DNA from: Macrostomum lignano
Lineage: Eukaryota
DNA: 64,000 nt
Assembly (NCBI GenBank): GCA_002269645.1
Contig: NIVC01003697.1
Span: forward strand, 1-64,000
Direction of reading: 5' to 3'
How positions within the stretch are numbered: the first letter of the stretch is position 1; every line of letters begins with the position of its first letter. The notes below the pieces were generated by a model. That model had not been told where the DNA came from. It ran no database searches and saw only the letters and a program-made list of their open reading frames with translations. Below are positions 14,031 through 63,225 of this stretch, piece after piece. Made by a program: the position numbers and the translations under genes.

Positions 14031-14069
14031 TGGCCCTGGGCTCTAGCCAGACATTGCATTTAATACAGT

Positions 14070-18395: not shown

Positions 18396-18934
18396 GGGAA
18401 AACGATTTCGTGACCAGCGGGCACGGTTGTCCTGTCTGCTACCTCAACGGCGAATACACAGCTACTTGCTGCCGATGACTCCATTTTTACTTGCTGACCG
18501 CACACAGTGAGCGTTTGGCGATTGCAGTCGATGACGCAGCCACAGTTTGCCAGGAAATCTGCACCCAGCAAAAAATCCTTGGCCAGATTGTCGACAACTA
18601 AAACTCTTTGTCGAACCGTTGCCACACCGAAACTTAGCTGCACTTCCTGCCAACCACAGGCAGCCAAATAGTTACCGTCTGCTAGCTTCAACTGCACCGG
18701 AGTCGTCAAAGGCAGGAGCCTGTCATTCAGCTTGCGGAACAGGGAACTTGACATCAAAGACTGGGAACACCCAGTGTCAACTAGACAGCTGGCAGGGATA
18801 CACATTGGCAGGATGCGACAGTTTACCAGCATGTTGGCACCAGTGGCTGAGCAGGACACCTCTACGATTGGTTGCGCCGGGATTCTCACTTGCGGAACGG
18901 CACCCCGGCGGTCGCCGCTCCATCGAAGTTTCCC
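18396..18934 (-). CDS. pol: Element B aspartic protease in the -1 frame (inverted segment, truncated at the breakpoint)
   Basis: LVDTGCSQSL catalytic motif and FLLGADFL flap motif. Confidence 0.85.
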
Positions 18935-19728: not shown

Positions 19729-19793
19729 AGCCGCCGCTGCCACCAATGTAAGAACAAGCGAAAACGAGAAATTGGCTTAAGGCGTAGACCGAC

Positions 19794-22467: not shown

Positions 22468-23368
22468 ATGCAGATTTTCTTAGAAATTTTTTTTGAAACA
22501 TTGACATTGCTTAAGTTTATTTTAATTTCCTCTTTTATTTCCCTCAAATATTTATTCGTTCAAATATTCGATCACAATTCGTCGAACTCATACTCGTTAC
22601 TTTTTTAACACAACGAAAAATGCAGAAAGTGAGTGGAACACTTTTTTTGAAAGAAGGAGAGCATTGTAAGATGGTTTGCTTAGTTGATTGCGTGTGCGCA
22701 CGTTCACTAGCTCTTATGTAAATTTGCTCGCTGTACAATGATAATATATAAGTGAATGCCTTGGCGCCCTGGGCAGCCAAGAGTCGGTCTACGCCTTAAG
22801 CCAATTTCTCGTTTTCGCTTGTTCTTACATATCCATACGAGTTAAAGAAGATGCTCAAAAGCTTCTCCGTGGACAACAAAGATGCTCAAGAGGCTCTGCT
22901 GTTCCATCAAAGTTTTAAACGGCTGCGATTTCGTCTTCACGTTCTTCGATGACAGCCTGCGCTTCTCAAAGACCAAGTCGGATCATCTCCGGCAACATCT
23001 CCGGCCTTAGGCTCCAAGTGCAAGATCGCGGTACCCGAAGTGACCTTTCTCGGCACACGATATACAAAGGATGGTGCCCAGCCCAGCCAAGAGAAGCTGG
23101 AGGCAATTCAGCAGTGGAAAGAGCTAAGGTCAGCCAAGGAGGTGCATCAGTTCATCGGCCTGTGTAACCAATATCGACGCCACGTAACCAACTTTGCTGC
23201 CATCGCCGTACGGCTGCAGCCTTCGACAAGCTCAAAAGGTGCCTAATTAGTCCTCCGATCCTGGTGACCCCGGATTTCACCAAGGAGTTCTCAGTCTTCA
23301 CGGATGCCAGCGGCAGCGGAGTCGGTGCGATTCTGAAGCAAGGCGAGGCGAGGCGGTGATCGAGTTCT

Positions 23369-25690: not shown

Positions 25691-25992
25691 GCTTGAAAAA
25701 GAACTCGAGTTGGATGTTTTGAGCAACTTTCTCGAAGCGGAAAAAATCAAAGCGTTTGTTTATACTTCCGCTATCGCCCAGTCCAGTATGAGACTGCAAT
25801 GTTACAACAGTAGTGCGTGAATCAAATAGAATATTTTTACGCGTTCCAAATTCATTTTTGTTCGAAAATACATGTACGTATCCAGAACGATTATCACAGG
25901 TCAGCTATCCAAGACCACTGGCCATCTCTGCTGCAACAGCTGCTGTGACAGTGAGCAAACTCTTGCTTGAAAACTTCGATCATCAAGTGATC

Positions 25993-27701: not shown

Positions 27702-27765
27702 AGGGTTAGGGTTAGGGTTAGGGTTGGATTAGGGTTAGGGTTAGGGTTAGGGTTAGGGTTAGGGG
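27702..27765 (+). repeat. Interstitial (TTAGGG)n telomere-like tract
   Basis: About ten TTAGGG units with one degenerate unit, embedded in degenerate short repeats. Confidence 0.85.
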
Positions 27766-28165: not shown

Positions 28166-31100
28166 CACAGATAATAAATACCCTAGATGGTTCACTCAGC
28201 ATTATCTTTATGCGTCAGTTTGATTTGCTACTCTCTGTCCAGTGGCATAAGCGCATATTTGCTCTATTTTTTGTCTTGACATAAAATATTTGGAGAGAAT
28301 GATGGTCTAGATGCCCGCGTCACACGCGCACAACCTTGGCGCTTTCAATTCTTTTATCTATGGCCAAGCTTGGCAGTGGATCGGAATTCTCAGGCGTAAA
28401 AACCAGTAGTAAAATCTGCACCCACCCCAAAAAGGCGTTGGTCTTGGCCATAGACAGTCGAAGAAATCGATTGACTTCGTTTCTAGCTAGCAGTCAAGTG
28501 GGACGAGATACGGAGTTTAAAGTAATAAGGCAGGACGGAGAAAGAAAAGATTTTACTTCGCACTTTACCAGCAAGCAGTGCAAGAACGACAAAAACACCA
28601 GCAACGCTTCTTGCAATCACCATACTGACATGGAATTCAGCTCAAAGCGCTGCTGTGCAGCCACCTGCACCCATACAGCGCAATCTCTAACGGACGAGGG
28701 AGTGGCTGTGCGAATGCACAGGTTTCCAGCGGACGACGGAGTTGCGAATCGATGGAGGCAAATGCTGGAAATCGACTTGGACATCGGAGCCATTCGCAAG
28801 ATGGGATTGCGAGTGTGCAGTGTGCATTTTACTGACAATGATTACAGCTGTCCTTCTCTGCGACATGAATATACCACACGTTTGCGATGGAATGCCGTTC
28901 CAGACAGGGAGCTGACTCTACCCCGCCTCATTGCACATGACCTGACACATTTGGTTTTTCGCAGTGACGAAGAGGCTGACAATCTCTATCCACCTGAACT
29001 GCAGCCATTCAACGGCACCGATGGTGAGCCGCCACAGGCCGAAGAGCAGCAGACAATGCCAACAGCCAACAGCTCAACCAACCAAGGTCATGCTGAACAA
29101 CGAAGCAATAACATCATCGCTCAGCTGCGCAGCAAAGTTCGCCGCCAAAAAACCACCATCCGACAGATGCAAGCGCGAATAGAAAAAGCAAAAGCAGTCC
29201 AGTCGGGTAGCAGCAGCTCAATAGCTACTCGTCTGATGCAGCAGAAAATCAGGCGTGATGTTCGCAGTCGCGGCATGCGCTGGACCAAAAAAGACATTGC
29301 GTGCTCAATTCAGCTGCATCACAAAGGCTCGTCAGCTTACCGACTGGTCCGCAATAAGTGGAAAATTCCGCTACCATCAAGTTCGACAATTAGGCGGCGA
29401 ATTCGACAGTATTTCGTATTGCCTGGGATTTGCAACTTGACGATACGATCCTTGCAGTCCAAGTTTGATGCATCATCGACAAATCAGCAGCGGATTGCTA
29501 CCCTTTGCTTCGATGGAATGAGTCTCACACCCAGCCTGCGCTACCAGCAACATCGTGACGTGGTGGTGGGCTGCGATCCACGAACCGCTGATGACAGCAA
29601 GGAGCAGTTGCCCAGACCTGTAAACGAGGCCATCGTCGCTGTGCTTCGAGGAGTCTTTCAGGACTGGAAACAACCAATCGCATATTATCCTGTTTTTCGA
29701 ACTCTTGGCCAAGAAGGATTCGGGATAGCTATTGATGAGTGCCTGACAGCTAGCCACAAGGCCGGGATTAAGGTCGTTGCACTGGTTGCGGATCAAGAGT
29801 CAACCCAGTGGGCTCACCTTTCCAGACGGGCTGACACTGCAAATCCTTTTTTACGTCACCCTGTAACCGGTGAGCCAGTCTACGTCATCGTGGACATCCC
29901 ACATTGCCTAAAAAATGCTAGAAACGCCCTGATGAAGAACGACATCAAATTCAACGAGTGCAAGCTAGCTAAGTGGCAGCATCTCATCCAGTTTTATCAG
30001 AACGACAGCGGCCCATCTCTCCGATTAGCAAGCAAGCTCACCGACGCTCATTTCAGCTTAGCTCTGGGTCAGAAGATGAAAGTATCGCTCGCAGCACAAG
30101 TGTTAAGCCATTCTGTTGCAAGTGGTATCAGGACTTTGGTCCATCATAATGAGTTATCTGAGGATGCGTTGCAGACAGCTGAATTTGCGAAGCGTCTGAA
30201 TGACATTTTCGACATGCTGAACTCAGCGCATCTCTATGGCAAAGGCTTCCAGCAGCCGATTCATCGCGATACTCTATCGGCGCAGATCGACCGTCTGACA
30301 GAGGCGGAAGACTTCGTGCGGAGCTGGCGCTTTCTCCCACTGAATGGGCGCGCTGTTAAGCCTACGATGCCATTCAAAGAAGGGTGGCTCCTATCGCTTT
30401 CTGCTACCAAGCAGCTGTGCACTACTCTCATTCGGGACCACCACTTTGACTACGTGTGTACTCGCCGATTTACTCAAGATCACGTTGAGGTAAGTTCACA
30501 AAATTTATTAAAAGCGAGACTATATTTCCATAATTAAATATTTAAAGATTACTTCACCCTAATTAGTGGTTCAGCAATGTACAAGAATTTGCATTGATGA
30601 AACAAAGGGCATCGTACAATTCTCCTCTTCAGAACCTTTTCTGCATCATCCGCGGGCACAACGGTTTTAACGACAGACCAGAGCTCAGCTCCTTCGTCGG
30701 TGCCCTGCGGTCCGTGGCTGCCAGCGGCCTGGCCCAGCCTGACTCGACGTCTCGCAACTGCGAAGACGACAACTGTGAGGCTGCCATCATAGCAGCCTGC
30801 GCCTCCACCGGTGCCGGAGACTGTGTGACTACCAAAGCGGGTCCACAGAACTCAAGCAGTGTTGTATGCCAGGCACCACAGCAGCAGCTGCTCCAAAAAA
30901 AACTGGACTCCTGGCAGGGCGCAAGCAATGTCTCGCTGGAAGCTGCTGAGTACGTTGGCGGATATGTGCTAAAGCGAAGCCGAGTTCTTCACTGTCAGGT
31001 GTGCAACTCTTTGCTTACAGCATCCGAATCTGCAGGGGTTCACATCCAGCACAAGACCTACTCGCATGCATTCCGCGGGTTGACTGCGCCCTCGCCGGTG

Positions 31101-31823: not shown

Positions 31824-34720
31824 TGTCGAATAGACAATAAACTAATAGAACGAGATTTAAGTGGTGCAGAAAGGAAGGAGGAGCAGAGGACGAGAACACC
31901 GGCCGTAGCCGCGAGTTGAACTTCTATTTATACTAACAACAATGAACAGGTTGGCTGAATAATTATCTATGGTGAATTAACGGTTGATATTGTCTGTGGG
32001 GAAGAGTATGGTAGATGAAGGGAGACGGCTAACTGAAAAGTACGAGTCTGAATTGCAAAATAGAAAGTACAAATATTTGGAGGATGGAAATCCGACAGGC
32101 TCGGGGGGCCAACGGGTAACGATAGATAGAGGGGATTTTGAACGGCAAAAACAGTAGAATGATTAAATAGCGAGTATTTGCGCATTGAGTTTAGTTCGTG
32201 AAAGCGGTCAACTGTTTAGTCAGGTTGTAACAATGCCGGGCCGGAAGCCGAGCCGGCAGGCGGGCCGGCAGACGAGACGGGCAGCATCTTCCTTGGTGTC
32301 AGCGCCGATGACGAGGTTGTCGACATAGAGGCTGCCAATGATGCGCTCGAGCTCGGATTGGGTGAGGTCGGAATCTCCCGAGTTAATTGCGTCTAAGCAT
32401 ATCTTGTGGAGGACTGCCAGGAGAATCCACGCTCTGGGAGAGGCGCCCATGACGATGCGAGTGAAGCGCCAGAGCTCGAAGCTGCCCTGTACTAGCGGCT
32501 TGGTGATGTACTTCGGGAGGATGATGCAGAGGACGTCGCGGTGAGGTTCGTGAACGCCTTTCTGGTAGAAGGCGGCCTTGAGGTCAGATGAGATGCCGAA
32601 CTGGTGAGCGCGGTGAACTAGAAGGACTTGAAGCATTGACGTCAGCAGGTTGGGCCCAGGCTCTAGGAGGTCGTTGAGTGTGGCGCCAGCGAGCGAGGTC
32701 TTGGTAGAAGCGTCGACGACGGGGCGGATCTTCGTCGTGTGGAGCTCCCCTTTATGACTGGGAAGTGCGGCAGAGTCTGGATGACTGGGCCAGCTACCTG
32801 GCCAGGGCTGACTCGTTCCAGGACACCTTCTTGCTTGCGCTTCTCGAACTCGGCGTAGTAGGCCTCGCGCTCGGGAAGGCTGAGGCGGCGGTGGGTGGCT
32901 TGAGCACGACCGAAGGCCTGGCCAAAGTTGGAAGGTAGGAGCTCGGCTCCAGGTTCGAATGGCAGGTCGACGGAGATTCGAACGTCGGTATCGCGCATGA
33001 TGGAGTCGGGCAGGCGTTCCTGGGGTCTGTCGTTCCTGGCGTCGGGCCTTTCAGCATCCTTTGCCGTTCCGAGAGCTTCGAGGTTGGACATGCTGTCCAG
33101 AAGTCGGTCGAGGTGGAGCCCATCGTTGTTAGGGAAAGTGTTCGCAATGACCACTTGCGAGGAGCCGAGGAAGCCGTTGAGACGAGAGGCTGTGGTATCA
33201 AGGGAGCCGTCGAGGATGGCCCGAAGGGTGTCGGGCAGGCTTTGAGAGTCGGTCGAAGCGCTTGGGCGGGTACGTTAGGGCTGATAGGCTGACTGGCGTC
33301 GCTGCAGGGACAAGAAGTCTTGGGCTCTTGGCTGGCAGTGGAACTTAACTTCGCGGCTGGGCGAGATTTAATGTCGGCGCAAGGAGCGGGGTCAGGTCGA
33401 TAGGCGTCCGACGATAAGCGATTGCCGATGCTGCGGGCTTGTGGCGGCTGGGAACTGGCGTTGTCCAGAAGGATGGCGGAAGCGAAGGTCGCAGCCGGCG
33501 GGGTAGCGGAAGCGGCTCTGAGCGTCTTCAGCTTGTAATCGAGGTGGCACTGGAGCTGTGTCATAGTTGGCATGAGAGGCTGCCCGTTGGCAGCACGAAG
33601 GTTGCGGATCTCACTCTGCAGCTCGATCGGGAGGCGGCTCCACAGGGCGTAGACGTAGCCGTCGATGGTGCTGGCGGGCTCGCCAAGGCGGAGGAGCTGG
33701 CCGGTAGCGAGTCGGAGGGCGTCGGTGTAGGTCTCGAGCTCGTCTATGTCGGAGGCAGAGTTGCAGTGAAGGGCGAGGAGACGCTGGAAGGAGGCGTTTT
33801 TTTGCTCCTGTGTGTCGGTGTAGTTGGCCTGGAGGACACGGCAGGCCTCGGCGTAGGCGTTGGGTTGGTAGGCATTGAGGGCACCGAGCTTCTTGAGAGC
33901 GGAGCCGGAGAGCAGACCGCGAAGCGCCTCGAATTTGTCGACGTCGTTGAGGCTGGAGCGGTCAACGCGGTAGACGAAGGCGTCCCAGAAGCCCGGAAAT
34001 GCAGCAGGGTCCGTACCGTCGAAGGTCGGGAGATGTACGTTCTTGAGAATGGTGGAGCGGATGAGCCCGGCCGGATCGTGAGCATCTGATGCGGGCGTTG
34101 AGGCAACTGGTGTCGAGGCTGGATGGACAGTGGCGGCGAGCTGCTGAATGAGCTGCTGGTTCTGCTGCATCATCGCGGTCATTGAGGCGATGAGGGCGTT
34201 TACGTCGACGGAGGCAGCGGGAGCTGTTGCAGGGATCAGAGTTGTGGAAGTAGCAGCGAGAGGAGCGGATGTCGTGGCGGATGAAGCAGCTGGCGGCGGG
34301 TCACTGGCTTCGACGGCGGCTGCTCCGCGGCAGTGGTCGCTTCAGTAGAGGTTGAGAGGTGGTCGTTCTGGGACTGCTGATGGTCGTCAGATTGGTCAGT
34401 TGTCGATCGTGTGATGACCATGGTAACCACGCTCTGCTACCAAAATTGTCGAATAGACAATAAACTTATAGAATGAGATTTAAGTGGTGCAGAAAGGAAG
34501 GAGGAGCAGAGGACGAGAACACCGGCCGTAGCCGCGAGTTGAACTTCTATTTATACTAACAACAATGAACAGGTTGGCTGAATAATTATCTATGGTGAAT
34601 TAACGGTTGATATTGTCTGTGGGGAAGAGTATGGTAGATGAAGGGAGACGGCTAACTGAAAAGTACGAGTCTGAATTGCAAAATAGAAAGTACAAATATT
34701 TGGAGGATGGAAATCCGACA
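31824..34720 (-). mobile_element. BEL/Pao LTR retrotransposon, internally deleted (non-autonomous)
   Basis: 274-bp LTRs at 31824-32097 and 34447-34720 (2 differences seen), 5-bp TSD CTAGC and PBS TGGTAGCAGAGCGTGGT at 34442-34426. BEL-type gag (LPTFDG..FWDAF..DKFEALRGLLSG) and RT remnants (DLKAAFYQ, YVDNL). No RNase H or integrase. Confidence 0.88.
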
Positions 34721-35880: not shown

Positions 35881-36218
35881 TATTAATAATATATTAATAA
35901 TTAATTAATACACCTGCCATACTGGACCAGATAAGCAAACGACAGCTCAGCCGCAGCTATTGCACGGTGCATCTGATAGCTGCGTACGGCTGTTCAGTCC
36001 AAGGAGTGGGGGGTCGCCACGCACCCTCGATTGCCCCAGCTAATGCTGGCACCTATTTTACATCTGGGTGAACCAAGATTTTACAAGTAATGCAGAGTAG
36101 TGTCTTGCTCAAAGATATAATGATTGTTCCAATGGAATCGGGAATCGAACCCCCCCCCCCCGACCTTCAAGTCGTGAGTCCGAGGCTCTATAGCCTCTAA
36201 CCAAGGCTGCAAACCCCC
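35881..36218 (-). mobile_element. tRNA-derived SINE, family 2 (CORE-like)
   Basis: The reverse complement is homologous to 59085-59370. B box ggttcgattccc and an (ATT)-rich tail. Confidence 0.75.
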
Positions 36219-41519: not shown

Positions 41520-44500
41520 TGTGGTGGCGTGTGGCGGTGTCGTGTGTTTGGAGTGTTGGGGCTGGGTTGGTTTGTGTTTTGGGGTTGCGATTCTGTGGCT
41601 ATTTTACCTCCTCTCTGTACTTTCGTTTGTGCGTACACCGTCGCATACTCATTCACACTCACACAATTGCTACTTTGCGTTTTTTAGTCCCTTTTATAAT
41701 ATCGTGTCAAAATATATAAGTCGCTGCAGTTGGAGTTTTCATGCAAGGGTTTTTCGGCTAGTGCCATCGTAAGTCAAGTTGTTTCACGGGCGACGAGATG
41801 TCAGTGTACGTCTACCCACGCGTTTGAGAACTTTAATGACAGAGAAGAGTCCTGGACGGAATACCAGGAGCGACTGGAGCAGTACTTTGAAGCGCATGGC
41901 ATCAGAGAAGATGCAAAGAAAAGAGCCGTCCTGCTAAGCGTTTGCGGCCGCCAGTCTTTTCAAATTGCTCGCAACCTTTGCTCGCCAGCCAAAGTCGGAG
42001 ACAAGAGCTATTCATACGAGTATATCTGCAAGCTTCTCAAAGAGTATCACTGTCCTACGCCATCAGAGATCGTTCAGCGCTTCGACTTCAACAACCGCGT
42101 CAGTAAGCCTGACGAGTCCGTATCAACATATCTGGCGGAGCTGCGGAAGCTGAGTGAGCACTGCAACTACAGCAATCTGGACGAGATGTTGCGAGACCGA
42201 CTGGTGTGCGGCATCAACAATCTGGAGATCCAGCGGCGATTGTTGGCGGAGCCCGAGTTGAATCTAAAATCCGCCACTGAAATTGCTTAGGCCCATGAGT
42301 CGGCAACAAAGAACTGCAAAGTCTTGGAATCAGCCACTGGGATCAGCGAGAGCAGCAAGACGGAGGATGCAGTTCTCAAAGTTCAGCAAGCACCAGATCA
42401 GAGGCGATGCGGCAGGTGCCTGTCGACAAGGCACATGTCCCAAAAGTGTCCGTTCATCGACAAGCAGTGTTTCCGGTGCCAGAAAAATGGACACGCGGCC
42501 AGGGCTTGCAGAAATCGGCCTCAGTAGGCGGCCAACCAAGTTTTTGAGGCGACAACCATCGAGAAGGATCAAGACGAGCCGTACTCTCTGCACCAATTTG
42601 GTTCCGGCACCACACGCAGAGAAACTGTGCCCCCGATCATCACAACTGTTTTCATTGACGGTCGCCCGTGTCTGATGGAGGTGGACACTGGAGCTTCCGT
42701 GTCGCTGATATCGGTGCGCACCTACAAGGATGTCCTCCACAGCGGCCCCAAGTTAAGCCCATCAACTGCTCTTCTGCTCAGCTAACCACATACTCCGGAC
42801 ACTCCGTTAATGTGCTCGGTAAGTTGGATTTGCCTGTCAGCAAGTCGCTTTCAGAAGAGTCCATCCGCCTTCCCCTGCTCGTCGTGGAGGGCAGCGGCCC
42901 AAGTCTGCTCGGCCGCGACTGGTTGCGGCAGCTGCAACTCGACTGGCAGTCCATCAAACAGCTGAAGTCCACAATTTGTACCCAAGTGCAAGGACTACTG
43001 GACGAATTCGCTGAGGTGTTTGGTGATCTTGGTACATTCAAAGGCACCCCACTGTCGATACAGCTGAAGCCGGACGCCAAGCCTCGGTTCTGCAAGGCTC
43101 GCCCGATTCCGTTCTCGCTGAAGGCCAAAGTCGAGCAAAAGCGAACAAGGAGGTGCAGCAGGGAGTTCTCAGAATGGGCGTCGCCGATCGTTCCTGTAAT
43201 GAAATCGGATGGCAGCATTCGGGGTATGCGCCCATTTTAAACAGACCGTCAACGTTTCTATTAATTCGGATACGTACCCGCTGCCGAACATTGACGAATT
43301 GTTCTCGAGACTCGCCGGAGGTAAGAAGTTTACCAAGCTGGACCTGAGTCAGGCCTTCTCTCAGATGCCCCTCGATGCTGCAGCTCAGGAGCTCTGCACG
43401 GTGAACACGCCGTTGGGGCTTCTTCGGTACTCGAGGCTTCCATTTGGTGTATCGACAGCGCCGAGCATGTTCCAGAGAGTCATGGACGGCCTGCTACAAG
43501 GCATTGCTCACTGCGTGGCATTTATGGACGATGTCATCGTCACTGGCCAGGACGATGAGAGCCACTGCAGCAACCTCAGGGCGGTGCTCTCCGTTTTTAA
43601 GGACGCTGGCTTGACCTACAGCCGTGAGAAGTGCGCGTTCATGCAGGATTCAGTGGTGTACCTGGGACACCGCATCGACTCGGAAGGCCTTCATCCACTG
43701 AAGGACAAGCTCCAAGCCATAGTGGACGCACCTGAGCCTATGGACCTGACGCAGCTGCGGAGTTTTCTGGGTCTCGTGAGTTACTATGGGAAGTTTCTGC
43801 CTAACTTGTCGACTGTCTTGAGTCCGCTACACCAGCTGCTCAACAAGGAGATCCGATGGCACTAGGGACAGTCGCAAAAGAAGGCTTTCGAGACCTGCAA
43901 GCGTCTTCTTGTCCAACCGAACGTCCTGGCTCACTATGATGCAGCAGCGGAGCTGTTCTTGGAGTGCGACGCTTCGGATCACGGAATTGGAGCCGTAATC
44001 TTTCATCGGGTCGGCGGTCTGGACAAGCCGGTTGCCTATGCGTCAAGTACCCTGAGTTCGGCCGAGCGGAACTATTGTCAGCTGGAGAAGGAGGCGCTCG
44101 CGCTGGTTTACGGCGTCAAGAAGTTCAACCAGTACCTCCTAGGCCGCGAGTTCAGTCTGTTAACGGATCATCGACCTCTTCTTAGGCTTCTCGGTGAAGG
44201 CAAGCAAATCCCGCCGTTGGCATCTGGCCGAGTGCAGCGATGGACACTGCTGCTGTCAGCATATCGGTACAAGCTGGTGCATCGCAGCGGCTCTTCGCTT
44301 CTCAGAGCGGATGCTTTTAGTCGTCTTCCAGCGCCGACTGCGGACCGACCGACCCCAGTGCCCGCGGAGATCGTCCTGCTAATGGACAGTCTGGATTCTG
44401 GTCCCGTCAGTTCCAAGGACATCTGCATTTGGACACGGCGGGATCCCCTGATGTCGCAGGTCGTTCGCTTCTGCCTTACTGGTTGGCTGGAGACCGCGCC

Positions 44501-46021
44501 ACCGGAGCTGTTGCAATACAGTCGCCGATCCAAGAAACTCTCTGTGCAGATGGCTGCCTGTTCTAGGATAGCCGCATCATTATTCCACCCGCAGGTCGCG
44601 TTCAGTTGCTTCAGTGTCTCCACCAGAGTCATCCGGGTTCTTCTCGTATGAAGTCGCTGCCCCGAAGCTATGTTTGGTGGCCAGGCATTGATCAGGAAAT
44701 CGAGTTGATGGTGGCGTCTTGTTCTAAATGTCAGCAAAATCAACGGGAAGCATCTCCGGTACTGCTGCAGCCCTGGCCTCTGCCTACGCAACCGTGGACG
44801 CGGATTCATGTCGACTATGCAGGGCCTGTTCGTGGCAAGATGCTGCTAGTCGTCGTGGACGCCTACTCGAAGTGGCTTGACGTCCACGTGACATCGTCGG
44901 CGACAGCGGCGACAACAGCAGAGAAGCTGCGGCAGAGCTTCTGTACGCATGGCCTGCCAGAAGTCGTGGTGACGGACAATGGGCCCTGCTTTGTGAGCGG
45001 TGAATTCGGCGAACTCTGTCGCCAAAACGGCATTCGACATGTGCGTACCCCGCCGTACCACCCTGCGTCCAACGGGTTGGCTGAGAGGGCCGTGCAAAGT
45101 TTGAAGCGCTCGCTGGAAAAGCAGACTGGTGGCACGCTCGAAACGCAGGTCGCCCGCTTCCTGATGAGCTACCGGATCACTCCGCACTCAACGACGGGAG
45201 CAGCGCCTTGTGAGCTTCTGATGGGGCAAACCCTGCGGTCATTACTGGATCACCCGCGTCCCAGCATCTCCCGGCGGGTCCTGGAGCGTCAGGAAAGCCA
45301 GAAGCTTCATCACGATTTGACGGCAAAGCCTCGATTCTTTGAAGAGAGAGAAGCGGTGTACGCTGGGAACTTCGGACAAGCGGCCAATTGGTCTCCCGCG
45401 GTCGTCACCCGGAAGGAGAACCCACTGTGGTACGAGTGCAGCCTGCCGGACAGCCGAGATATCCGGCGACACGCGGATCACCTGCGAGAACGTCCAGCCG
45501 ATCCAATGTCGGACACATCGGAGTCACCGGAGGTCGCTACGGCAACGCCACAAGAACTGCCCGTGCCGAAGGCCGGTTCGGCGCCGACGGCCGAGTCCAA
45601 AACGCCGTTGAAGCCCGCGGCGGAATCCGAGCTCCGCCGGTCTGGACGCACCCGGGCACCTCCCGACCGGCTGATGTACAAGTGACTAAAGGCTGAGGCT
45701 GAGACAAAGACTGAACTGTAACTGAGTTGGGTTCCGCTCTTGGTTGGGAGAGGTGTGGTGGCGTGTGGCGGGTGTCGTGTGTTTGGGATGTTGGGGCTGG
45801 GTTGGTTTGTGTTTTGGGGTTGCGCTGCTGTGGCTATTTTACCTCCTCTCTGTATTTTCGTTTGTGCGTAAACTGTCACGTACTCATTCACACTCACACA
45901 ATTGCTACTTCGCGCTTTTTAGTCCCTTTTATAATATCGTGTCAAAATATATAAGTCGCTGCAGTTGGAGTTTTCACGCAAGGGTTTTTCGGCTAGTGCC
46001 ATCGTAAGTCAAGTTGTTTCA
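41520..46021 (+). mobile_element. Full-length decayed Ty3/Gypsy element D
   Basis: LTRs at 41520-41786 and 45754-46021 (roughly 5% divergent by eye) and a mutated tRNA-Ser-type PBS (cgggcgacgag). Gag with zinc knuckles, PR (VDTGAS), RT (FMDDV), RNase H and IN (IHVDYAGP, VTDNG). Several stops and frameshifts. Confidence 0.9.
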
Positions 46022-52136: not shown

Positions 52137-52707
52137 TGTCCGAGATTGAACCTTACTGTGAATGGTAGGATTCCCCTGTGAATGGTAGGATTCCCCTGTT
52201 AATGGTAGGATTCCCCTGTTAATGGTAGGATTCCCCTGTGAATGGTAGGATTCCCCTGTGAATGGTAGGATTCCTCTGTGAATGTTAGAATTCCCCTGTG
52301 AATTCACAGGATTCCCCTGTGAATGCCAGAATTCCCCTGTGAATGCTATAATTTCCTTGGGAATGGTAGAATTCCCTTATGAATGTTAGAATTCCCCTGT
52401 GAATGTTAGAATTCCCCTGTGAATGGTAGGATTCCCCTGTTAATGGTAGGATTCCCCTGTGAATGGTAGGATTCCCTTGTGAATGCCAGAATTATCCTGT
52501 GAATGCTATAATTTCCTTGGGAATGGTAGAATTCCCCTGTGAATGGTAGAATTCCCCTGTGAATGTTAGGATTCCCCTGTGAATGTTAGAATTTCCCTGT
52601 GAATGGTAGGATTCCCCTGTGAATGTTAGGATTCCCCTGTGAATGTTAGAATTCCCCTGTGAATGGTAGGATTCCCCTGTGAATGTTAGAATTCCCATGT
52701 GAATGTT
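52137..52707. repeat. 20-bp minisatellite in LARGE intron 1 (gaatggtaggattcccctgt)
   Basis: Tandem units. Confidence 0.9.
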
Positions 52708-53244
52708 AGAAATCACCATAAGAACTTGTCAGAGCCTCTTTATAATTTTACTAATACGGTACCTTTTTGCAATTACCAGGATGCCAAAGCGAAAAAGCGG
52801 TCCCAATTTTTATATCCGCATTCCTGAACTCCCCCTGCGGCAGGTGAGCTGGCTGTCCAACACGCACTACTCAGGCGTGTACGGCCTGCTAAAGCTGACG
52901 CTGCCCTCCGTGCTGCCCCGGTCTCTCGAGCGGGTCATTGTGCTGGACACTGACGTGGCGGTGACGGCCGACCCCCTCCAGCTGTGGCAGCTGTTCGGCC
53001 AGCTGGCCGAGCGGCCCGGCCTCGCTATCGGGCTGGCGGACAACCTGTCCGATTGGTACCTGTCTGGCAAGGCCGGGGTCTGGCCAGCTCTGGGGCGCGG
53101 CTTCAACACCGGGGTGATGCTCATGCACCTCGCCAGGCTGCGGGCCTGGGGCTGGGACAGGCACTGGCCTGCCGTGGCCAGGGAGTGCGCGGCCAAGCAT
53201 GGACCCGCCCAGCTGGCTGACCAGGTGTGGCGGTGCTTCACCTG

Positions 53245-53640
53245 ATGGGGATTTGGGATATTTTATAGTTGGTGGGGATTTGTAATATTTTTATAGTTGG
53301 TGGGGTTTTGGGATATTTTTATAGTTGGTGGGGTTTTGGGATATTTTAATGTTGGTGGGGTTTTGGGATATTTTATAGTTGGTGGGGTTTTGGGATATTT
53401 TAATGTTGGTGGGGTTTTGGGATATTTTTATAGTTGGTGGGGTTCTGGGATATTTTAATGTTGGTGGGGTTTTGGGATATTTTATAGTTGGTGGGGTTTT
53501 GGGATATTTTTTATGTTGGTGGGGTTTTGGGATATTTTTTATGTTGGTGGGGTTTTGGGATATTTTATAGTTGGTGGGGTTTTGAGATATTTTATAGTTT
53601 CTGAGGATTAGGGATATTTTATAGTTACCGAGGATTAGGG
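53245..53640. repeat. ~28-bp minisatellite in LARGE intron 2 (ttggtggggttttgggatattttatag)
   Basis: Tandem units. Confidence 0.9.
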
Positions 53641-54347
53641 ATATTTTAAATCTTTAATGTGATAACAGAAAGAGTTGGGATATTTCTTTTATTTAAGATT
53701 TTGGCGACTGAATCCCGGAATCCCTCGGCACCAACTCCGCCCGCCCGCAGGACGTCATCAACGCCCTGGTGCGGCGGCACCCGGGTCTACTGGAATGTGC
53801 AGCTCGGTGACCACACCCAGCCGGAACTGTGCTACCGCTCCCCCGCCAACCTGCCCAGCGTTCGCATCCTGCACTGGAACTCGCCGCTGAAGGTTTGGGG
53901 CGCCCGCAGGCATCGATTCGCGCAGCACTTCCACACGCTGTACATGACCTACTTGGACTATGATGGCGGCCTGTTGCGCAGGCGGCTGTTCGCCTGTCCG
54001 GACGATGGCGCGGAGGACGACCAGGACCAGCTGCTGGCAGAGGACGCCTCCGGTGCCAACTCGCTCGCCGGCCCGGCTGCCGCTGGCGTCAGCGCCGGGG
54101 ACGAGTGCTACGAGATGCGGGCGGAGCAGCGGCTGGTCCGGAGGACGCACCTGTACTACTTGGAGTACAACTACACCGCCCAGGGGCCTCACGATGTCAC
54201 CCTGGTCAGCCAGCTCAGTCTGGATCGGGTACAGCTGCTGGAGAGCCTGTCGCGACACTGGGCCGGCCCCATCAGCCTTTGCATCTACGTCACGGATGCT
54301 GAGGCCCACCAGTTGGCCACCTTTGTTGAGTCTTCTCAGGTTTGTGC

Positions 54348-54632
54348 GATCCCACATCCCTAATTAATGAGATCCCACATCCCTAATCAATGAGATCCCA
54401 CATCCCTAACCAATGAGATCCCACATCCCTAATCAATGAGATCCCACATCCCTAACCAATGAGATCCCACATCTCTAATCAATGAGACCCCACATCCCTA
54501 ACCAATGAGATCTCACATCCCTAATCAATGAGATCCACATCCCTAACCAATGAGATCCCACATCCCTAACCAATGAGATCCCACATCCCTAACCAATGAG
54601 ATCCCACATCCCTAACCAATGAGATCCCACAT
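54348..54632. repeat. 23-bp minisatellite after LARGE exon 3 (gatcccacatccctaaccaatga)
   Basis: Tandem units that abut coding sequence at 54633. Confidence 0.9.
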
Positions 54633-55090
54633 CATGAGTCCGAGGGCCACCGGGCCACGGACTTCACCCGGTGGAAGTCGGCCACCCAGTCGTACCCGGT
54701 GACCTGGCAGGCTGACTTCGAGCCCTACGTGGTCATCGGCCGGGACGCCGCCAGGTTTGACACCAGATTCGTGGGGTTCGGCTGGAACAAGGTGTCCTTC
54801 ATCATGCAGCTGGACATCCTGGGATTCGCTTTCCGAGTGCTGCCCAATGCCTTCATCGTGCACCTGCCGCACGCGCCGAGTCTGGACGTGGCGAGGTTCA
54901 GGTTCATACCGGAGTACCGACACTGCATCAACACGCTGAAGGTGGAGTACATCAAGTACTTGGCTAAGAGGCATGGAGTCCGCGCGCTCAAGTATTTGTC
55001 ATTTCGTAGGGACGCGAGTGGGTCTGTGGGATCGTCCTAGCAGCATTCCCTGGGACTCTTGGGTAGCTGGATCTTGCGTCACTGGCTGCT

Positions 55091-55730
55091 GAGATGCTGT
55101 GTGTCTCACTGAGATGCTGTGTGTCTCACTGAGATGCTGTGTGTCTCACTGAGATGCTGTGTGTCTCACTGAGATGCTGTGTGTCTCACTGAGATGCTGT
55201 GTGTCTCACTGAGATGCTGTGTGTCTCACTGAGATGCTGTGTGTCTCACTGAGATGCTGTGTGTCTCACTGAGATGCTGTGTGTCTCACTGAGATGCTGT
55301 GTGTCTTACTGAGATGCTGTGTGTCTCACTGAGATGCTGTGTGTCTCACTGAGATGCTGTGTGTCTTACTGAGATGCTGTGTGTCTCACTGAGATGCTGT
55401 GTGTCTCACTGAGATGCTGTGTGTCTCACTGAGATGCTGTGTGTCTCACTGAGATGCTGTGTGTCTCACTGAGATGCTGTGTGTCTCACTGAGATGCTGT
55501 GTGTCTCACTGAGATGCTGTGTGTCTCACTGAGATGCTGTGTGTCTTACTGAGATGCTGTGTGTCTCACTGAGATGCTGTGTGTCTCACTGAGATGCTGT
55601 GTGTCTTACTGAGATGCTGTGTGTCTCACTGAGATGCTGTGTGTCTCACTGAGATGCTGTGTGTCTCACTGAGATGCTGTGTGTCTCACTGAGATTCTGT
55701 GTGTCTCACTGAGATGCTGTGTGTCACTGA
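55091..55730. repeat. 20-bp minisatellite (gagatgctgtgtgtctcact)
   Basis: About 30 near-identical units 3' of LARGE. Confidence 0.95.
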
Positions 55731-56308
55731 GAATCGCATGATAGATACTTAAGATTTTCACTTCAACAAAAAGATTTTAATTTCTGCTATTTACGCCAAT
55801 TTTTTCAACATATCCTCCTTATACTACTTAACAAGTGAGCAAAATATCAGTAGTATCAGCTGAACACCAGCCGCAGACATGCAGTTGTTATTCCACTCCA
55901 GTTCATTCTAGTCAAAGCGACTTTGTTCTTTGCTTTTATTTGCTAAAGTATCGATTGGAAATTGCTAGCAAAATGTTGTGCACCAAATGCGGGTTTTTAT
56001 TCGTGTACTCTGCACACTTTACACCAATGTTTATCTTGCACCGATCACGTTCTTATCAGTTCGATTTAAATCCCAATTTGACCCTGATTTGTAGCATTTA
56101 TTGCATTTTAATTGCACGGCGAATTCAATCGATTGCTTAATTGATCAATTATTAGTTCATCTTGTGCTGCAATGTGTAAAATGAAAAGGCTTAATTAAAA
56201 ACACATTTTACAAATTAAATTTGTTAAAGCTAGGGATATAATTAATACCAACGGCTTCTGAATCTCAAATTGGATACTTGTGAATCTTCCATTATTAATT
56301 TATTTTTA

Positions 56309-58100
56309 TCGGAGCTGTGAATGTGTTAGACACTCAGTGAACTGTTAGAGATCGGAGCTCTGAATGTGTTAGACACTCAGTGAACTGTTAGAGATCGGAG
56401 CTCTGAATGTGTTAGACACTCAGTGAACTGTTAGAGATCGGAGCTCTGAATGTGTTAGACACTCAGTGAACTGTTAGAGATCGGAGCTGTGAATGTGTTA
56501 GACACTCAGTGTGAACTGTTAGAGATCGGAGCTCTGAATGTGTTAGACACTCAGTGTGAACTGTTAGAGATCGGAGCTCTGAATGTGTTAGACACTCAGT
56601 GAACTGTTAGAGATCGGAGCTCTGAATGTGTTAGACACTCAGTGAACTGTTAGAGATCGGAGCTCTGAATGTGTTAGACACTCAGTGAACTGTTAGAGAT
56701 CGGAGCTCTGAATGTGTTAGACACTCAGTGAACTGTTAGAGATCGGAGCTCTGAATGTGTTAGACACTCAGTGAACTGTTAGAGATCGGAGCTGTGAATG
56801 TGTTAGACACTCAGTGTGAACTGTTAGAGATCGGAGCTCTGAATGTGTTAGACACTCAGTGTGAACTGTTAGAGATCGGAGCTCTGAATGTGTTAGACAC
56901 TCAGTGAACTGTTAGAGATCGGAGCTCTGAATGTGTTAGACACTCAGTGTGAACTGTTAGAGATCGGAGCTCTGAATGTGTTAGACACTCAGTGTGAACT
57001 GTTAGAGATCGGAGCTCTGAATGTGTTAGACACTCAGTGTGAACTGTTAGAGATCGGAGCTGTGAATGTGTTAGACACTCCGTGAACTAGCGGCCTGTTA
57101 GAGATCGGAGCTGTGAATGTGTTAGACACTCAGTGTGAACTGTTAGAGATCGGAGCTCTGAATGTGTTAGACACTCAGTGTGAACTGTTAGAGATCGGAG
57201 CTCTGAATGTGTTAGACACTCAGTGTGAACTGTTAGAGATCGGAGCTCTGAATGTGTTAGACACTCAGTGTGAACTGTTAGAGATCGGAGCTGTGAATGT
57301 GTTAGACACTCAGTGTGAACTGTTAGAGATCGGAGCTGTGAATGTGTTAGACACTCCGTGAACTAGCGGCCTGTTAGAGATCGGAGCTGTGAATGTGTTA
57401 GACACTCCGTGAACTAGTGGCCTGTTAGAGATCGGAGCTGTGAATGTGTTAGACACTCAGTGAACTAGCGGCCTGTTAGAGATCGGAGCTGTGAATGTGT
57501 TAGACACTCAGTGAACTAGCGGCCTGTTAGAGATCGGGGCTGTGAATGTGTTAGACACTCCGTGAACTTGTGGCCTGTTAGAGATCGGAGCTGTGAATGT
57601 GTTAGACACTCCGTGAACTAGTGGCCTGTTAGAGATCGGGGCTGTGAATGTGTTAGACACTCAGTGAACTTGTGGCCTGTTAGAGATCGGAGCTGTGAAT
57701 GTGTTAGACACTCCGTGAACTTGCGGCCTGTAAGAGATCGGAGCTGTGAATGTGTTAGACACTCAGTGAACTAGCGGCCTGTTAGAGATCGGAGCTGTGA
57801 ATGTGTTAGACACTCAGTGAACTAGCGGCCTGTTAGAGATCGGAGCTGTGAATGTGTTAGACACTCAGTGAACTTGCGGCCTGTTAGAGATCGGAGCTGT
57901 GAATGTGTTAGACACTCCGTGAACTAGTGGCCTGTTAGAGATCGGAGCTGTGAATGTGTTAGACACTCAGTGAACTAGCGGCCTGTTAGAGATCGGGGCT
58001 GTGAATGTGTTAGACACTCAGTGAACTAGCAGCCTGTTAGAGATCGGGGCTGTGAATGTGTTAGACACTCCGTGAACTTGTGGCCTGTTAGAGATCGGGG
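56309..58100. repeat. 43/45/51-bp minisatellite array
   Basis: Core unit gttagagatcggagctctgaatgtgttagacactcagtgaact, with +gt and +agcggcct variants. Confidence 0.95.
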
Positions 58101-58596
58101 CCGCAAGTTTTAACCGAGTTCAATGGCAATTTTTTTGCTAATTTTAGCAAGCGTGCCTAATTGAATATCTTATTCTTTGAGTCTACTAAACTGAATGAGA
58201 ACCAAGATAAAAGGTGCTCATTGTGCTGGTGTGGGTACTCGTTCTCAGTTGGAATTAGTTTGTTCTCAGGTAAATTTATTACAGCTGCTGTGTGCAAGGT
58301 AGAAAACTAGATTTAGCATTTTGTCTCGGAGACAAAGGGCTTGTCTGGGGCCTGGCAGGACTCCCACTGCTAACACTGCATCACTGCCAAGGCTAAATGA
58401 AAGCAGAGCATTTCCCAGACTCACACTGTTGATGGCGCAGTACTCGTATTCGTGTGCAATGAAACTTATTTTCTCGCGAAATTAATTTGATAAATTAAAC
58501 CGAACAGTAAGAGGCTCGAGGGCTTCTTCTCAAGCCGTCTCTCACGTGTTTCCGACCTTGGCAAAGGCAATGTGCGGAGCGGATCGGGCGTATATC

Positions 58597-58603
58597 TATA
58601 AAT
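58597..58603 (+). promoter_or_regulatory. TATA box of the peptide precursor gene
   Basis: TATAAAT about 60 nt upstream of the ATG at 58664. Confidence 0.5.
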
Positions 58604-58663
58604 AAGCTGGCGTGAACAGCTCGAGTGTTGGAGATCGCAACCAGCTGCACTACACGAGTCACA

Positions 58664-58900
58664 ATGAAGCTCCGGTTTTGTCTCGCAATGCTGACTGCCT
58701 CGGCTTTGCTGCTGCTGGCGCTGCTGCCGGCGGGCGCCAACGGCGAGGCCGAGCGACCGGACGATGATGAGGCCGACGGGCCGCTGGCCGACCTGGAGGA
58801 GCCGAGCAGCTCGGAGCTCGAGGAGGAGCTCGCCGCCCAGCAGAAATGGTTCGTCCGCTGGCGCAGGAGGAGGTGGAGGTTTCGCTTCTTCCGCGGCTGA
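58664..58900 (+). CDS. 78-aa secreted prepropeptide, candidate amidated Arg/Trp-rich antimicrobial peptide
   Basis: Signal peptide MKLRFCLAMLTASALLLLALLPAGANG, then a spacer with 14 D/E residues, then KWFVRWRRRRWRFRFFR-G-stop. GC-rich codon usage like the other exons. TATA box upstream and AATAAA at 58983-88. Confidence 0.8.
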   Translation: MKLRFCLAMLTASALLLLALLPAGANGEAERPDDDEADGPLADLEEPSSSELEEELAAQQKWFVRWRRRRWRFRFFRG

Positions 58901-59084
58901 AGGTTGTCGAATCGATAGAGACTATTGGCTTCTGGATGAAACTCCCCGCTGCGTTTACAGCAGCTTCGTCATGCTGCCATTAAATAAAACTTTTTATATG
59001 AAGCCCTCGACAGTATCTTCTCGACTTTCACGGCATTTCTTTTAGTCTCTTGTAATAACTTTCGATCAATCATCGCCGATTGAA

Positions 59085-59370
59085 GGGGCTGCAGCCCAGT
59101 GGTCAGAGCGTCGGACTCGCGACTGAAAGGTCGGGAGTTCGATTCTCGACCTATTCGGAACAATTTGTGTCCTTAAACAAGACACTTAACTCTGCATTGC
59201 TTCAGTCCACACAGCTGTAAAATGGGTGCCAGCATTAGCTGGGGTAATTGAGAGTGTGTGTGGCGACCCCACAGTCCTTGGACTGAACAGCCGTACGCAG
59301 CCTTCAAATGCGCCGCGCAATAGCTGCGGCTGAGCTGTCGGTTGCCAATCTGATGATCAATTATTATTAG
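59085..59370 (+). mobile_element. tRNA-derived SINE, family 2 (CORE-like)
   Basis: A box cagcccagtgg, B box gagttcgattctc, CORE-like block gtgtccttaaacaagacacttaac..tgtaaaatggg and an (ATT)n tail. Confidence 0.8.
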
Positions 59371-61282: not shown

Positions 61283-62345
61283 CCATCAGCTGGAAGAAGC
61301 GAATCTCGCAGATGGTCAGGACCACTCCTGTCAGGGTCTGAACCCGCAGCACCCTGCCGCTGAGACCGCAGCTCACATTGAAGACGGACTCGGGAGTCTC
61401 TGTGGAGTAGCTGGCGCACTGAACTCCATCCATCAGCAGCTGGAAGTTCGCCAGCCTCTCCGGGCAGCAGTCGGCTCGATTCCACAGGGTGACGAAGTCG
61501 ACTCGAGCTGGGGAGCCGAGCTCGGCCTGCCACCAGGCTGCCGTGTCTGAGCTGTTGGTAGCTGAGCAGCTGTCAGAGTTCCAGTACTGCGCTGTGCTGC
61601 CGTCGATGGCCCTGTCGCAGCTGGTGAAGTGAAAGGTGGAACTCTGATTGCAGGAGACAGGCGTCAGCAGCCTCACGGGAGCCTGGGTCATCGGCTGCAT
61701 CCTGAAATATGAGAAATTTGTGTTTTTAGCTAGTACTAGCAAGCAGCGCCCTCCCCCCCCTGCAACAAAGAATTGAATATAAGCTTATGAACAAACTACA
61801 TCTCAGCAACCCCCCCCCCCCGAAAGCTTTGACTTCTCAACAATTTCTCAAAAGAATCTTTTGCTGGACATGACGCTTCTTTTCGACATGACGCTTTTAT
61901 GCTTGACATGGTGCTTCATTTATGTTTGACATGATGTTTCATTTATGTTTGACATGATGTTTCATCTATGTTTGACATGATGTTTCATCTATGTTTGACA
62001 TGATGTTTCATCTATGTTTGACATGATGTTTCATCTATGTTTGACATGATGTTTCATCTATGTTTGACATGATGTTTCATCTATGTTTGACATGATGTTT
62101 CATCTATGTTTGACATGATGTTTCATCTATGTTTGACATGATGTTTCATCTATGTTTGACATAACGCATTTTCGAGATGACGCTTTTTATGGAGTTTATG
62201 TGCATCCTGAGGGCTCTGTGAAAACGAGGATGCTTGATATTCCACCATCGACGCACGGCTACAACTCAGCAAGCAACTCTGGCCCGCACTCCTTCGGAAC
62301 TCACCAAACAGCCGCGAATAATAGGGCTATCAACATTGAATTCAT
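61283..62345 (-). CDS. Secreted F-type lectin (fucolectin/FTP domain); exons 62345-62305 and 61701-61283, gene continues leftward
   Basis: The signal exon MNSMLIALLFAAV(W) ends at a phase-2 gtgagt donor that joins in frame to the phase-2 acceptor at 61701. Domain motifs: RAIDG, SCSAT, AWWQAELG, VTLWNRADCCPERL, GRVLRV and LTICEI. Phase-1 donor at 61282. Confidence 0.85.
61870..62165. repeat. 23-bp minisatellite in lectin intron 1 (atgatgtttcatctatgtttgac)
   Basis: Tandem units. Confidence 0.9.
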
Positions 62346-62554
62346 GCGATTTTAGATGATCTGATCTAAAAAATCCTGCGAGACAGCATACAGCCAAATG
62401 AGCTGTGCAGTGAGTAAATGATCCCCTATAATGCAGGAGATGAGCCACTTCGCCGGTGCTGATTGGTCCGGGCGCTCGAGGTTCGGAAAGTCAAGGGAAA
62501 GAGCTTGTAGTTTTGAATTTTGCTTTGCTACTAATGAGTAGTAATAGTATCAGA

Positions 62555-63225
62555 GTGTCACTGGTCACTGTTGTTGAGTGTCACTGGTTAAAAATGAGTG
62601 TCACCGGCTCAAACTGAGTGTCACTGGCTCAAACTGAGTGTCACTGACTAAAAATGTGTGTCACTCGCTCACAATGAGTATCCCTTTCTCGAAATGAGTG
62701 TCACTGGCTAAAAATGAGTGTTACTGGCTCACAATGAGTATCACTTGCTTGAAATGAGTGTCACTGGCTCAAAATGAGTGTCACTGGCTCAAAATGAGTG
62801 TTACTGGCTCACAATGAGTATCACTTGCTTGAAATGAGTGTTACTGGCTCACAATGAGTATCACTTGCTTGAAATGAGTGTCACTGGCTCAAAATGAGTG
62901 TCACTGGCTCAAACTGAGTGTTACTGGCTCACAATGAGTATCACTTGCTTGAAATGAGTGTCACTGGCTCAAAATGAGTGTCACTTGCTTGAAATGAGTG
63001 TTACTGGCTCACAATGAGTGTCACTGGCTCAAAATGAGTATCACTTGCTTGAAATGAGTGTCACTGGCTCAAAATGAGTGTCACTGGCTCAAAATGAGTG
63101 TTACTGGCTCACAATGAGTATCACTTGCTTGAAATGAGTGTCACTGGCTCAAAATGAGTGTCACTGGCTCAAAATGAGTGTCACTAGCTCACAATGAGTG
63201 TCACTGGCTCACAATGAGTATCACT
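62555..63225. repeat. ~20-bp minisatellite (aatgagtgtcactggctcaa, with tatcacttgcttg variants)
   Basis: Tandem units with higher-order alternation of variants. Confidence 0.9.

Follow-up and report, generated by a model that had tools for sequence, protein, structure and literature searches.

The window analysed here, a 64,000-nucleotide (nt) stretch of contig NIVC01003697.1 from the flatworm Macrostomum lignano (assembly GCA_002269645.1), carries at positions 58664-58900 of the forward strand a small intronless gene with a 78-amino-acid (aa) product, MKLRFCLAMLTASALLLLALLPAGANGEAERPDDDEADGPLADLEEPSSSELEEELAAQQKWFVRWRRRRWRFRFFRG. This product is best read as the precursor of a secreted, host-defence-type (antimicrobial) cationic peptide, a tentative assignment to which we give a probability of roughly 45%. 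It is predicted to consist of a signal peptide, an anionic propiece and a cationic tail rich in Arg, Trp and Phe. The 17 tail residues that precede a terminal Gly match known Arg/Trp-rich antimicrobial peptides (AMPs) in their composition (53% K/R, 41% W/F) and in carrying an amidation signal. In Hydra, bipartite charge segregation together with a taxon-restricted origin is typical of AMP precursors (PMC10945409). Flatworms are without the canonical lophotrochozoan AMP groups, and divergent ones are to be expected in them (PMC10414684). The host-defence reading is favoured because of the Hydra-like bipartite layout, the gap in the flatworm AMP repertoire, the composition of the tail and the Gly residue before the stop codon.

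Architecture of the predicted precursor

The gene and its product comprise the following features, given with their positions in the window.

58436-58916, +, invariant block of 481 nt, comprising the proximal promoter, the 5' untranslated region (UTR), the whole coding sequence (CDS) and the first 16 nt of the 3'UTR
58597-58604, +, TATA box TATAAATA, read from the sequence; starts 28 nt 5' of the implied transcript 5' end
58625-58663, +, inferred 5'UTR of ~39 nt, from the start of the 5'-partial CDS on the NIVC01003909.1 copy
58664-58900, +, CDS, single exon, from ATG (58664-58666) to TGA (58898-58900); 78 codons plus TGA, uninterrupted
58664-58744, +, predicted signal peptide, residues 1-27, from its n/h/c build and the (-3,-1) rule, with A25 as the alternative point of cleavage
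58745-58843, +, anionic propiece, residues 28-60; 33 aa with 14 D/E and 1 R, net charge -13, isoelectric point (pI) 4.05
58844-58897, +, cationic Arg/Trp/Phe-rich tail KWFVRWRRRRWRFRFFRG, residues 61-78; 18 aa, net charge +9
58862-58873, +, RRRR, residues 67-70, read from the sequence as the only canonical furin/prohormone-convertase motif in the precursor
58982-58987, +, polyadenylation signal AATAAA, overlapping ATTAAA at 58979-58984; kept in all three genomic copies

The N-terminus begins with MKLR (+2), which is followed by a 17-residue hydrophobic Leu/Ala core, with 11-residue Kyte-Doolittle means of up to 2.4, and then by PAGANG. Two sites fit the (-3,-1) rule, AGA|NG and ANG|EA, and the corresponding signal peptide lengths of 25 and 27 aa are both plausible. 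The initial annotation of this DNA had given 27 aa; the n/h/c build and the site after G27 agree with it, but this is one of the two possible lengths. Its counts for the remainder of the precursor, a 33-aa spacer with 14 acidic residues and an 18-aa C-terminus with nine K/R, three W, four F, no Cys and a terminal Gly, all hold, the basic residues of the tail being one K and eight R. A Gly directly before the stop codon is the classical amide donor, and the last residue of the tail is potentially one. The proposed layout of a signal followed by an anionic, charge-neutralising propiece and a cationic tail is likewise borne out by the charges: with -13 in the propiece and +9 in the tail, the pro-form of ~51 aa has a net charge of -4 and a pI of 4.7. 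The acidic propiece roughly neutralises the cationic tail, and the charge-neutralisation idea is arithmetically sound.

The tail had also been described as amphipathic, which has to be corrected. Its hydrophobic moment for an alpha-helix (100 degrees) amounts to 0.06 with the Eisenberg scale, where 98% of shuffles score higher, and to 0.14 with the Fauchere-Pliska scale, where 88% do (12th percentile). In the same shuffle test, melittin, magainin-2 and LL-37 lie at least at the 98th percentile, and indolicidin and tritrpticin do not. A peak in periodicity near 156-160 degrees, which stems from the W-R-F-R-F alternation, is borderline (~95th percentile). Hence, the tail is not an amphipathic alpha-helix and resembles the non-helical indolicidin/tritrpticin type. 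AlphaFold2, run without an alignment, places helices at residues 3-20 and 49-76 with a mean predicted local distance difference test score of 64.6, which is too weak to build on.

The gene and its three genomic copies

The intronless 78-aa open reading frame (ORF), the TATA box and the AATAAA reported in the initial annotation are all present, and the coordinates given for the ORF are exact. The start codon lies in the context ACAATGA, with an A at -3, and no upstream ATG is present in 58605-58663, i.e. between the TATA box and the start codon; on the 3' side, AATAAA is located 82 nt from the stop codon. Base composition within the ORF has a period of three, with a GC content of 0.69, 0.49 and 0.87 at the first, second and third codon positions (GC1, GC2 and GC3), and the flanks have 45-47% GC. 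The codons CTG, GCC and GAG are favoured, as in neighbouring host ORFs (host GC3 0.68-0.78). When all 176 ATG-initiated ORFs of at least 50 aa in the window are put to a crude test, seven have a signal-like N-terminus, and only the peptide ORF has an 18-residue tail of +9 (next highest +7). Two ORFs overlap the gene in other frames, one of 93 aa (58764-59045, +), which reads through the polyadenylation signal, and one of 81 aa (58495-58740, -). Neither has the period-3 GC pattern. These frames are open across the gene because the GC-rich island contains few stop codons, and both ORFs are taken as by-products of composition.

Several other identities of the locus were considered and rejected. 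The ORF is not taken as a terminal exon of the upstream glycosyltransferase gene, as it comes with a TATA box, an ATG and a predicted signal peptide of its own and is called separately on all three contigs. Nor is it taken as part of a transposon, since the window holds no second copy and the LARGE-like gene remains syntenic with it. As judged from the annotation only, a trans-spliced 5' end does not fit, there being no AG directly before the implied 5' end, and Rfam and ARAGORN report no RNA gene anywhere in the window, the locus included. We regard the locus as a real, intronless gene flanked by a TATA box and a polyadenylation signal, for which transcript support is indirect.

This support comes from the annotation of NIVC00000000, the Mlig_3_7 assembly of the free-living marine flatworm M. 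lignano. An identical protein is annotated on three of its contigs, NIVC01003697.1 (the window), NIVC01003350.1 and NIVC01003909.1. Since each of the three loci lies downstream of a LARGE-like glycosyltransferase gene with GT8 and GT49 domains, they are syntenic copies, whether homeologues or haplotigs, of a partly duplicated genome. In M. lignano, 180 Mb of non-repetitive sequence is contained in duplicated blocks at an identity of at least 95% (PMC5730564). The GenBank annotation of Mlig_3_7 is derived exclusively from a genome-guided transcriptome, which was assembled with StringTie, TACO and TBONE from RNA-sequencing, trans-splice and poly(A) reads and in which ORFs were called by TransDecoder (PMC5730564). 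Because the annotation is transcript-based, the NCBI proteins recorded at the three loci each imply an assembled transcript and thus, indirectly, that the peptide gene is transcribed. On NIVC01003909.1 the CDS is annotated as a 5'-partial product of 91 aa, whose first residue is a Val at the GTG equivalent to 58625. The transcript model must begin at this point, because the in-frame TGA at 58613, 5' of the peptide ORF, would otherwise have closed the frame. We infer a transcription start at ~58625, which is 28 nt 3' of the first T of the TATA box and hence at canonical spacing.

The three copies are identical in protein and in CDS DNA. In a MAFFT alignment of the copies (L001, L002 and L003), the 481-nt invariant block is bounded by the nearest variable columns at window positions 58435 and 58917. 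Of 915 columns in the well-aligned flanks, 34 (3.7%) are variable, with a pairwise divergence of 1.5-3.5%, and given this variation the probability of finding no change in the 237-nt ORF is 1.3e-4. The 3'UTR of the peptide gene has three substitutions and three indel columns within 70 nt. Since synonymous sites and the promoter are as invariant as the rest, constraint or conversion would have acted on the whole unit and not on the protein specifically.

As far as the libraries reach, the gene appears to be a species-restricted orphan and not a demonstrated family. No Pfam family matches the precursor at E-values up to 10; a word-indexed search of 5.8 billion proteins returns, at E-values up to 10, only the query itself among 27 candidates, an exhaustive phmmer search against 1.84 billion cluster representatives returns only the query as well, and the PDB sequences contain no match. 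Neither a flatworm nor any other animal orthologue is found in the protein libraries, and Pfam, the protein libraries and the PDB show no similarity to a named AMP family (arminin, cathelicidin, myticalin, cecropin, dermaseptin etc.), in keeping with the statement in the initial annotation that the product is not assignable to one. A match to a known non-immune protein, which had been named there as evidence to the contrary, was looked for in the protein libraries and none was found. The term 'lineage-specific family' used there is right about the lineage restriction, no homologue being found, but not about a family, as only three identical copies and no paralogue are present. Paralogues with variable C-termini, for which a search had been proposed, were found neither in the window, where tblastn and blastn searches with the ORF plus flanking sequence give nothing above noise, nor among the annotated proteins of the libraries; unannotated genomic paralogues and other Macrostomum species lay outside this search. 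The string WRFRFFR has no match in the full-text literature, and the literature on AMPs, neuropeptides and secreted gland proteins of M. lignano yielded nothing resembling the peptide.

Host defence weighed against other explanations

From sequence and composition we infer secretion, amidation, points of cleavage and an antimicrobial role, and we hypothesize that these would act together as follows. The signal peptide of 25 or 27 aa would send the product into the secretory pathway, and the acidic block (-13) would offset the C-terminal block (+9), keeping the cationic part harmless and soluble in storage. Peptidylglycine alpha-amidating monooxygenase (PAM) would turn the terminal Gly into a C-terminal amide, and proteolysis would release a cationic, aromatic, non-helical peptide, which would bind to and perturb anionic microbial membranes. 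Arg/Trp-rich membrane-active peptides work through contacts between Arg and phosphate groups and between aromatic residues and the membrane interface, without helical amphipathicity. The released peptide may act in the same manner as indolicidin, tritrpticin and synthetic (RW)n peptides, by Arg-phosphate and Trp/Phe-interface contacts and not as an amphipathic helix.

By analogy, the M. lignano precursor would work most like the precursors of the arminin and promelittin type, and its peptide chemistry is closest to that of indolicidin, tritrpticin and (RW)n peptides; homology places it in none of these groups. Hydra arminins also have a signal peptide, a negative part and a positive C-terminal part and are taxon-restricted (PMC10945409). 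In contrast, arminins occur in clustered families of 9-12 paralogues, whereas the M. lignano gene is present in three identical copies that form no cluster, and there is no sequence similarity between the two. Like the M. lignano gene, arminins have no homologues outside their genus, and the sequence does not readily show where their active part is released; this part, of ~31 aa, is Lys/Arg-rich and not Trp/Phe-rich like the M. lignano tail. A second Hydra peptide, NDA-1, was rejected as a bipartite linear analogue since it is Cys-rich. Prepromelittin and the amphibian precursors of the dermaseptin superfamily are likewise ~70-80 aa long and are composed of a signal, an acidic propiece and a cationic C-terminal peptide with a terminal Gly, and prepromelittin also has no dibasic site before the mature peptide. 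However, its propiece is removed stepwise as X-Pro/X-Ala dipeptides, whereas the M. lignano propiece (EA-ER-PD-DD...) is without the dipeptide periodicity that lets a dipeptidyl peptidase trim promelittin. The amphibian precursors differ in having a KR site and in forming families with conserved signal and propiece regions, and melittin and the dermaseptins are amphipathic helices, which the M. lignano tail is not, and show no homology to it.

Indolicidin, tritrpticin and synthetic (RW)n peptides such as RWRWRW-NH2 resemble the tail in being short, linear, Cys-free, dominated by Arg and Trp/Phe and not helical-amphipathic. Their hydrophobic-moment profile is similar as well, and indolicidin in addition has a C-terminal amide, as predicted for the M. 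lignano tail. Unlike the M. lignano peptide, indolicidin and tritrpticin are cathelicidins, the cathelin propiece of which is cut by elastase in vertebrate neutrophils; Pfam finds no cathelin domain in the M. lignano precursor, and its tail is free of Pro and much more highly charged, with +9 in 17 residues. Among flatworm candidates, mesco-1/2/3 of Mesocestoides corti, fAMP-LP-5/-17 and the Schistosoma SmDLP are also encoded by small, intronless, genome-mined genes and are cationic and lineage-restricted with a signal peptide (PMC11546468, PMC10414684, PMC12466427). They differ in that none is Arg/Trp/Phe-rich or similar in sequence, mesco-2 and fAMP-LP-5 being helical peptides of the Lys/Arg/Ile/Gly type, and in that they come from parasites, whereas M. 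lignano is free-living and marine.

A number of points weigh against a host-defence function. Arminins, periculins and amphibian AMPs occur as multigene families or tandem clusters, and neither was found for the M. lignano gene. Almost any Arg/Trp-rich peptide kills bacteria in vitro, and a positive minimum inhibitory concentration assay alone is no proof of a physiological role. The invariant block could be a gene-conversion or low-diversity tract and not the outcome of protein-level selection. An in-silico AMP screen of helminths included the Mlig_3_7 proteome, and the peptide does not appear in the portion of its supplement text that was searched (PMC10414684). The pipeline of this screen drops duplicates, peptides of less than 10 aa after dibasic cleavage and peptides without sequelogs (PMC10414684), and because of these filters the peptide would probably have been dropped. 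Finally, no processing site is present between propiece and tail, and the best convertase site, RRRR|W71, splits the tail in two.

The question of processing bears on which peptide would be made. Furin and prohormone convertases cleave according to the rule R-X-K/R-R. The initial annotation correctly noted that no dibasic site precedes the cationic block, none being present before K61, and proposed release at QQK|W, for which known processing rules offer no support. The P4, P6 and P8 positions of K61 are not basic, and therefore cleavage at QQK|W is not predicted by the usual monobasic rule. Release of the 17-mer would need a protease different from a convertase, as with Hydra arminins. More can be said for the alternative named in the initial annotation, release of WRFRFFR-amide at the internal RRRR: since the sole canonical convertase motif lies inside the 17-mer, the 17-mer is predicted to be no more likely a product than WRFRFFR-NH2. 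With a convertase in the producing cell, the expected amidated product would be WRFRFFR-NH2 and not the 17-mer. The monoisotopic masses of the two candidates are 2639.51 Da for the 17-mer KWFVRWRRRRWRFRFFR-NH2 and 1112.61 Da for WRFRFFR-NH2. Other possible products have calculated masses of 3583.54 or 3754.61 Da (free propiece), 4486.04 Da (residues 28-66) and 6205.04 Da (amidated pro-form left intact).

The shorter product would suit a signalling-peptide precursor (neuropeptide, hormone or pheromone), in which a convertase would cleave at RRRR|W, a carboxypeptidase would trim the Arg residues and PAM would generate WRFRFFR-NH2 as the ligand of a receptor or channel, the acidic stretch being an ordinary spacer. 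We consider this unlikely, even though the precursor has no canonical convertase site other than RRRR and ends in Gly, RRRR|WRFRFFR-G-stop combining the basic cleavage site and C-terminal Gly of amidated neuropeptide precursors. Small precursors with an acidic spacer are common among flatworm neuropeptide precursors, and a Phe/Arg-rich C-terminus is found in flatworm FMRFamide-like peptides (FLPs), e.g. GNFFRFamide; the FLP and neuropeptide F (NPF) precursors of flatworms share with the M. lignano gene a signal peptide, a basic cleavage motif, a C-terminal Gly and a Phe/Arg-rich end. However, the amidated end would be -FFR-NH2 and not the -RFamide (-RF-NH2) that defines FLP and NPF peptides, and the charge of the precursor is extreme. 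Only a single peptide copy is present, without a flanking dibasic pair N-terminal to a conventional product, the protein libraries hold no orthologue from other flatworms or animals, and no similar M. lignano neuropeptide was found in the literature. Some invertebrate members of the ASC/DEG-ENaC family are gated by amidated peptides, and 33 kb upstream of the peptide gene there is a DEG/ENaC ORF; as transposons separate the two, this proximity is probably coincidental. A doubtful explanation, too, is that of a different gland secretion, of the seminal-fluid/prostate, cement/shell-gland, rhabdite/mucus or adhesive/releasing-gland kind, in which the charge-segregated pro-form itself, with its acidic and its Arg/aromatic block, would be at work and could, for instance, condense in granules or on surfaces through cation-pi or electrostatic interactions. 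A small, predicted secreted, orphan product of a TATA-driven gene with very high GC3 is typical of abundant gland transcripts, and many lineage-specific secreted prostate and adhesive-organ transcripts are described for M. lignano (PMC5977470, PMC8621496). The absence of a cleavage site between the two charge blocks is consistent with an uncleaved pro-form, as is the continuous helix at residues 49-76 that AlphaFold2 places, with low-to-moderate confidence, across the block junction. On the other hand, the product is without the repeats or the Cys/Gly/Lys-rich domains of known flatworm adhesive proteins, and a Gly right before the stop codon is more typical of amidated bioactive peptides.

It seems improbable that the ORF, though transcribed, has no function or is of very recent origin, being a stretch rich in GC and purine triplets that is open by chance and was called by TransDecoder. 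It would account for the complete lack of homologues in Pfam, the protein libraries and the PDB, for the low-complexity (GAG)n- and (AGG)n-like DNA beneath both charged blocks (EEE, RRR) and for the open 93-aa (+) and 81-aa (-) frames. In the same direction, neither Logan nor other sources give independent evidence for the protein, although its absence from Logan is uninformative on expression, given the uncertain coverage of eukaryotic runs. Against a chance origin stand the period-3 GC pattern with a GC3 of 0.87 in the annotated frame only, the well-placed TATA box, the Kozak A at -3, the AATAAA and the canonical build of the signal peptide, as well as the full identity of the three copies over 237 nt, against a pairwise divergence of 1.5-3.5% in their flanks, and a combination of features that is unique in the window. 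We see a slight chance of a new non-antimicrobial role, either for the uncleaved precursor as a diblock 'polyampholyte' of one acidic and one Arg/aromatic cation-pi block (in granule self-condensation, attach-and-release adhesion or mating) or for WRFRFFR-NH2, which would be a novel type of signalling peptide outside the RFamides and might bind a peptide-gated DEG/ENaC channel. Both options imply a gene of recent birth that is specific to the genus and has taken on a new role, which RNA interference (RNAi) or transgenesis could test directly.

The antimicrobial repertoire of flatworms is largely undescribed, with only a few candidates, which are from parasites (PMC10414684, PMC12466427). If the host-defence reading is true, this repertoire would gain a new sequence type with a linear, Cys-free, Arg/Trp/Phe-rich amidated peptide from a free-living marine species. 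Arg/Trp-rich cationic peptides and precursors with an anionic propiece are already well known, so that a positive result would extend, and not overturn, current knowledge. The gene is also a clean example of an orphan gene on low-complexity GAG/AGG DNA with an acquired promoter, signal peptide and polyadenylation signal. With RNAi by soaking, transgenesis and transparent tissues, M. lignano allows cell type, processing and in-vivo role to be quickly tested. The gene is a good candidate for study in this tractable model, but its design class is familiar and its function putative.

Genomic surroundings

The LARGE-like bifunctional glycosyltransferase gene (GT8, PF01501, and GT49, PF13896) is located at 52703-53245 and 53659-54363 (+) in the window, at 1916-5003 in L002 and at 2788-5123 in L003. 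In the window copy, a 27-nt minisatellite at 53246-53648 splits the two ORF pieces, and the called product has 212 aa, compared with 449 and 510 aa in the other copies; the window copy may be truncated or decaying. Minisatellite arrays are unusually dense in 52156-58098 and 61898-63225.

52156-52709, minisatellite, 20-nt units x28
54348-54633, minisatellite, 23-nt units x12.5
55089-55725, minisatellite, 20-nt units x32, 98% identity
56308-58098, minisatellite of 1.8 kb with 51/153-nt units, ending ~570 nt upstream of the peptide gene
61898-62162 and 62575-63225, further minisatellite arrays

On the other side, a SINE-like repeat with a tRNA-like head (GGGGCTGCAGCCCAGTGGTCAGAGCG...GGTCGGGAGTTCGATTCTCGACC) at 59105-59352 (+) begins ~100 nt 3' of the polyadenylation signal of the peptide gene, and a second copy with 78% identity is found at 35928-36189 (-). 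The repeat was rejected as a tRNA, since neither ARAGORN nor Rfam calls one.

The window is rich in transposons, which are found at 13400-22500, 28336-30537, 32794-34182 (-) and 43209-45685.

14070-17732, LINE-type endonuclease, reverse transcriptase (RT) and RNase H
19621-22467, Ty3/gypsy-type pol with RT, RNase H and integrase
28336-30537, P-element-like transposase with a THAP domain
32794-34182, -, gag-like ORF with DUF1759
43209-45685, second RT plus integrase

Repeated peptide matches at ~8.2-9.0 kb and 17.8-23.2 kb suggest duplicated parts of such elements. The DEG/ENaC ORF, uninterrupted and 507 aa long, lies at 24227-25750 (-) and matches the ASC/DEG-ENaC family (PF00858) with E=1e-12. 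A short interstitial telomere-type repeat, (AGGGTT) x10.7, which in another register reads as the TTAGGG motif, is located at 27702-27764.

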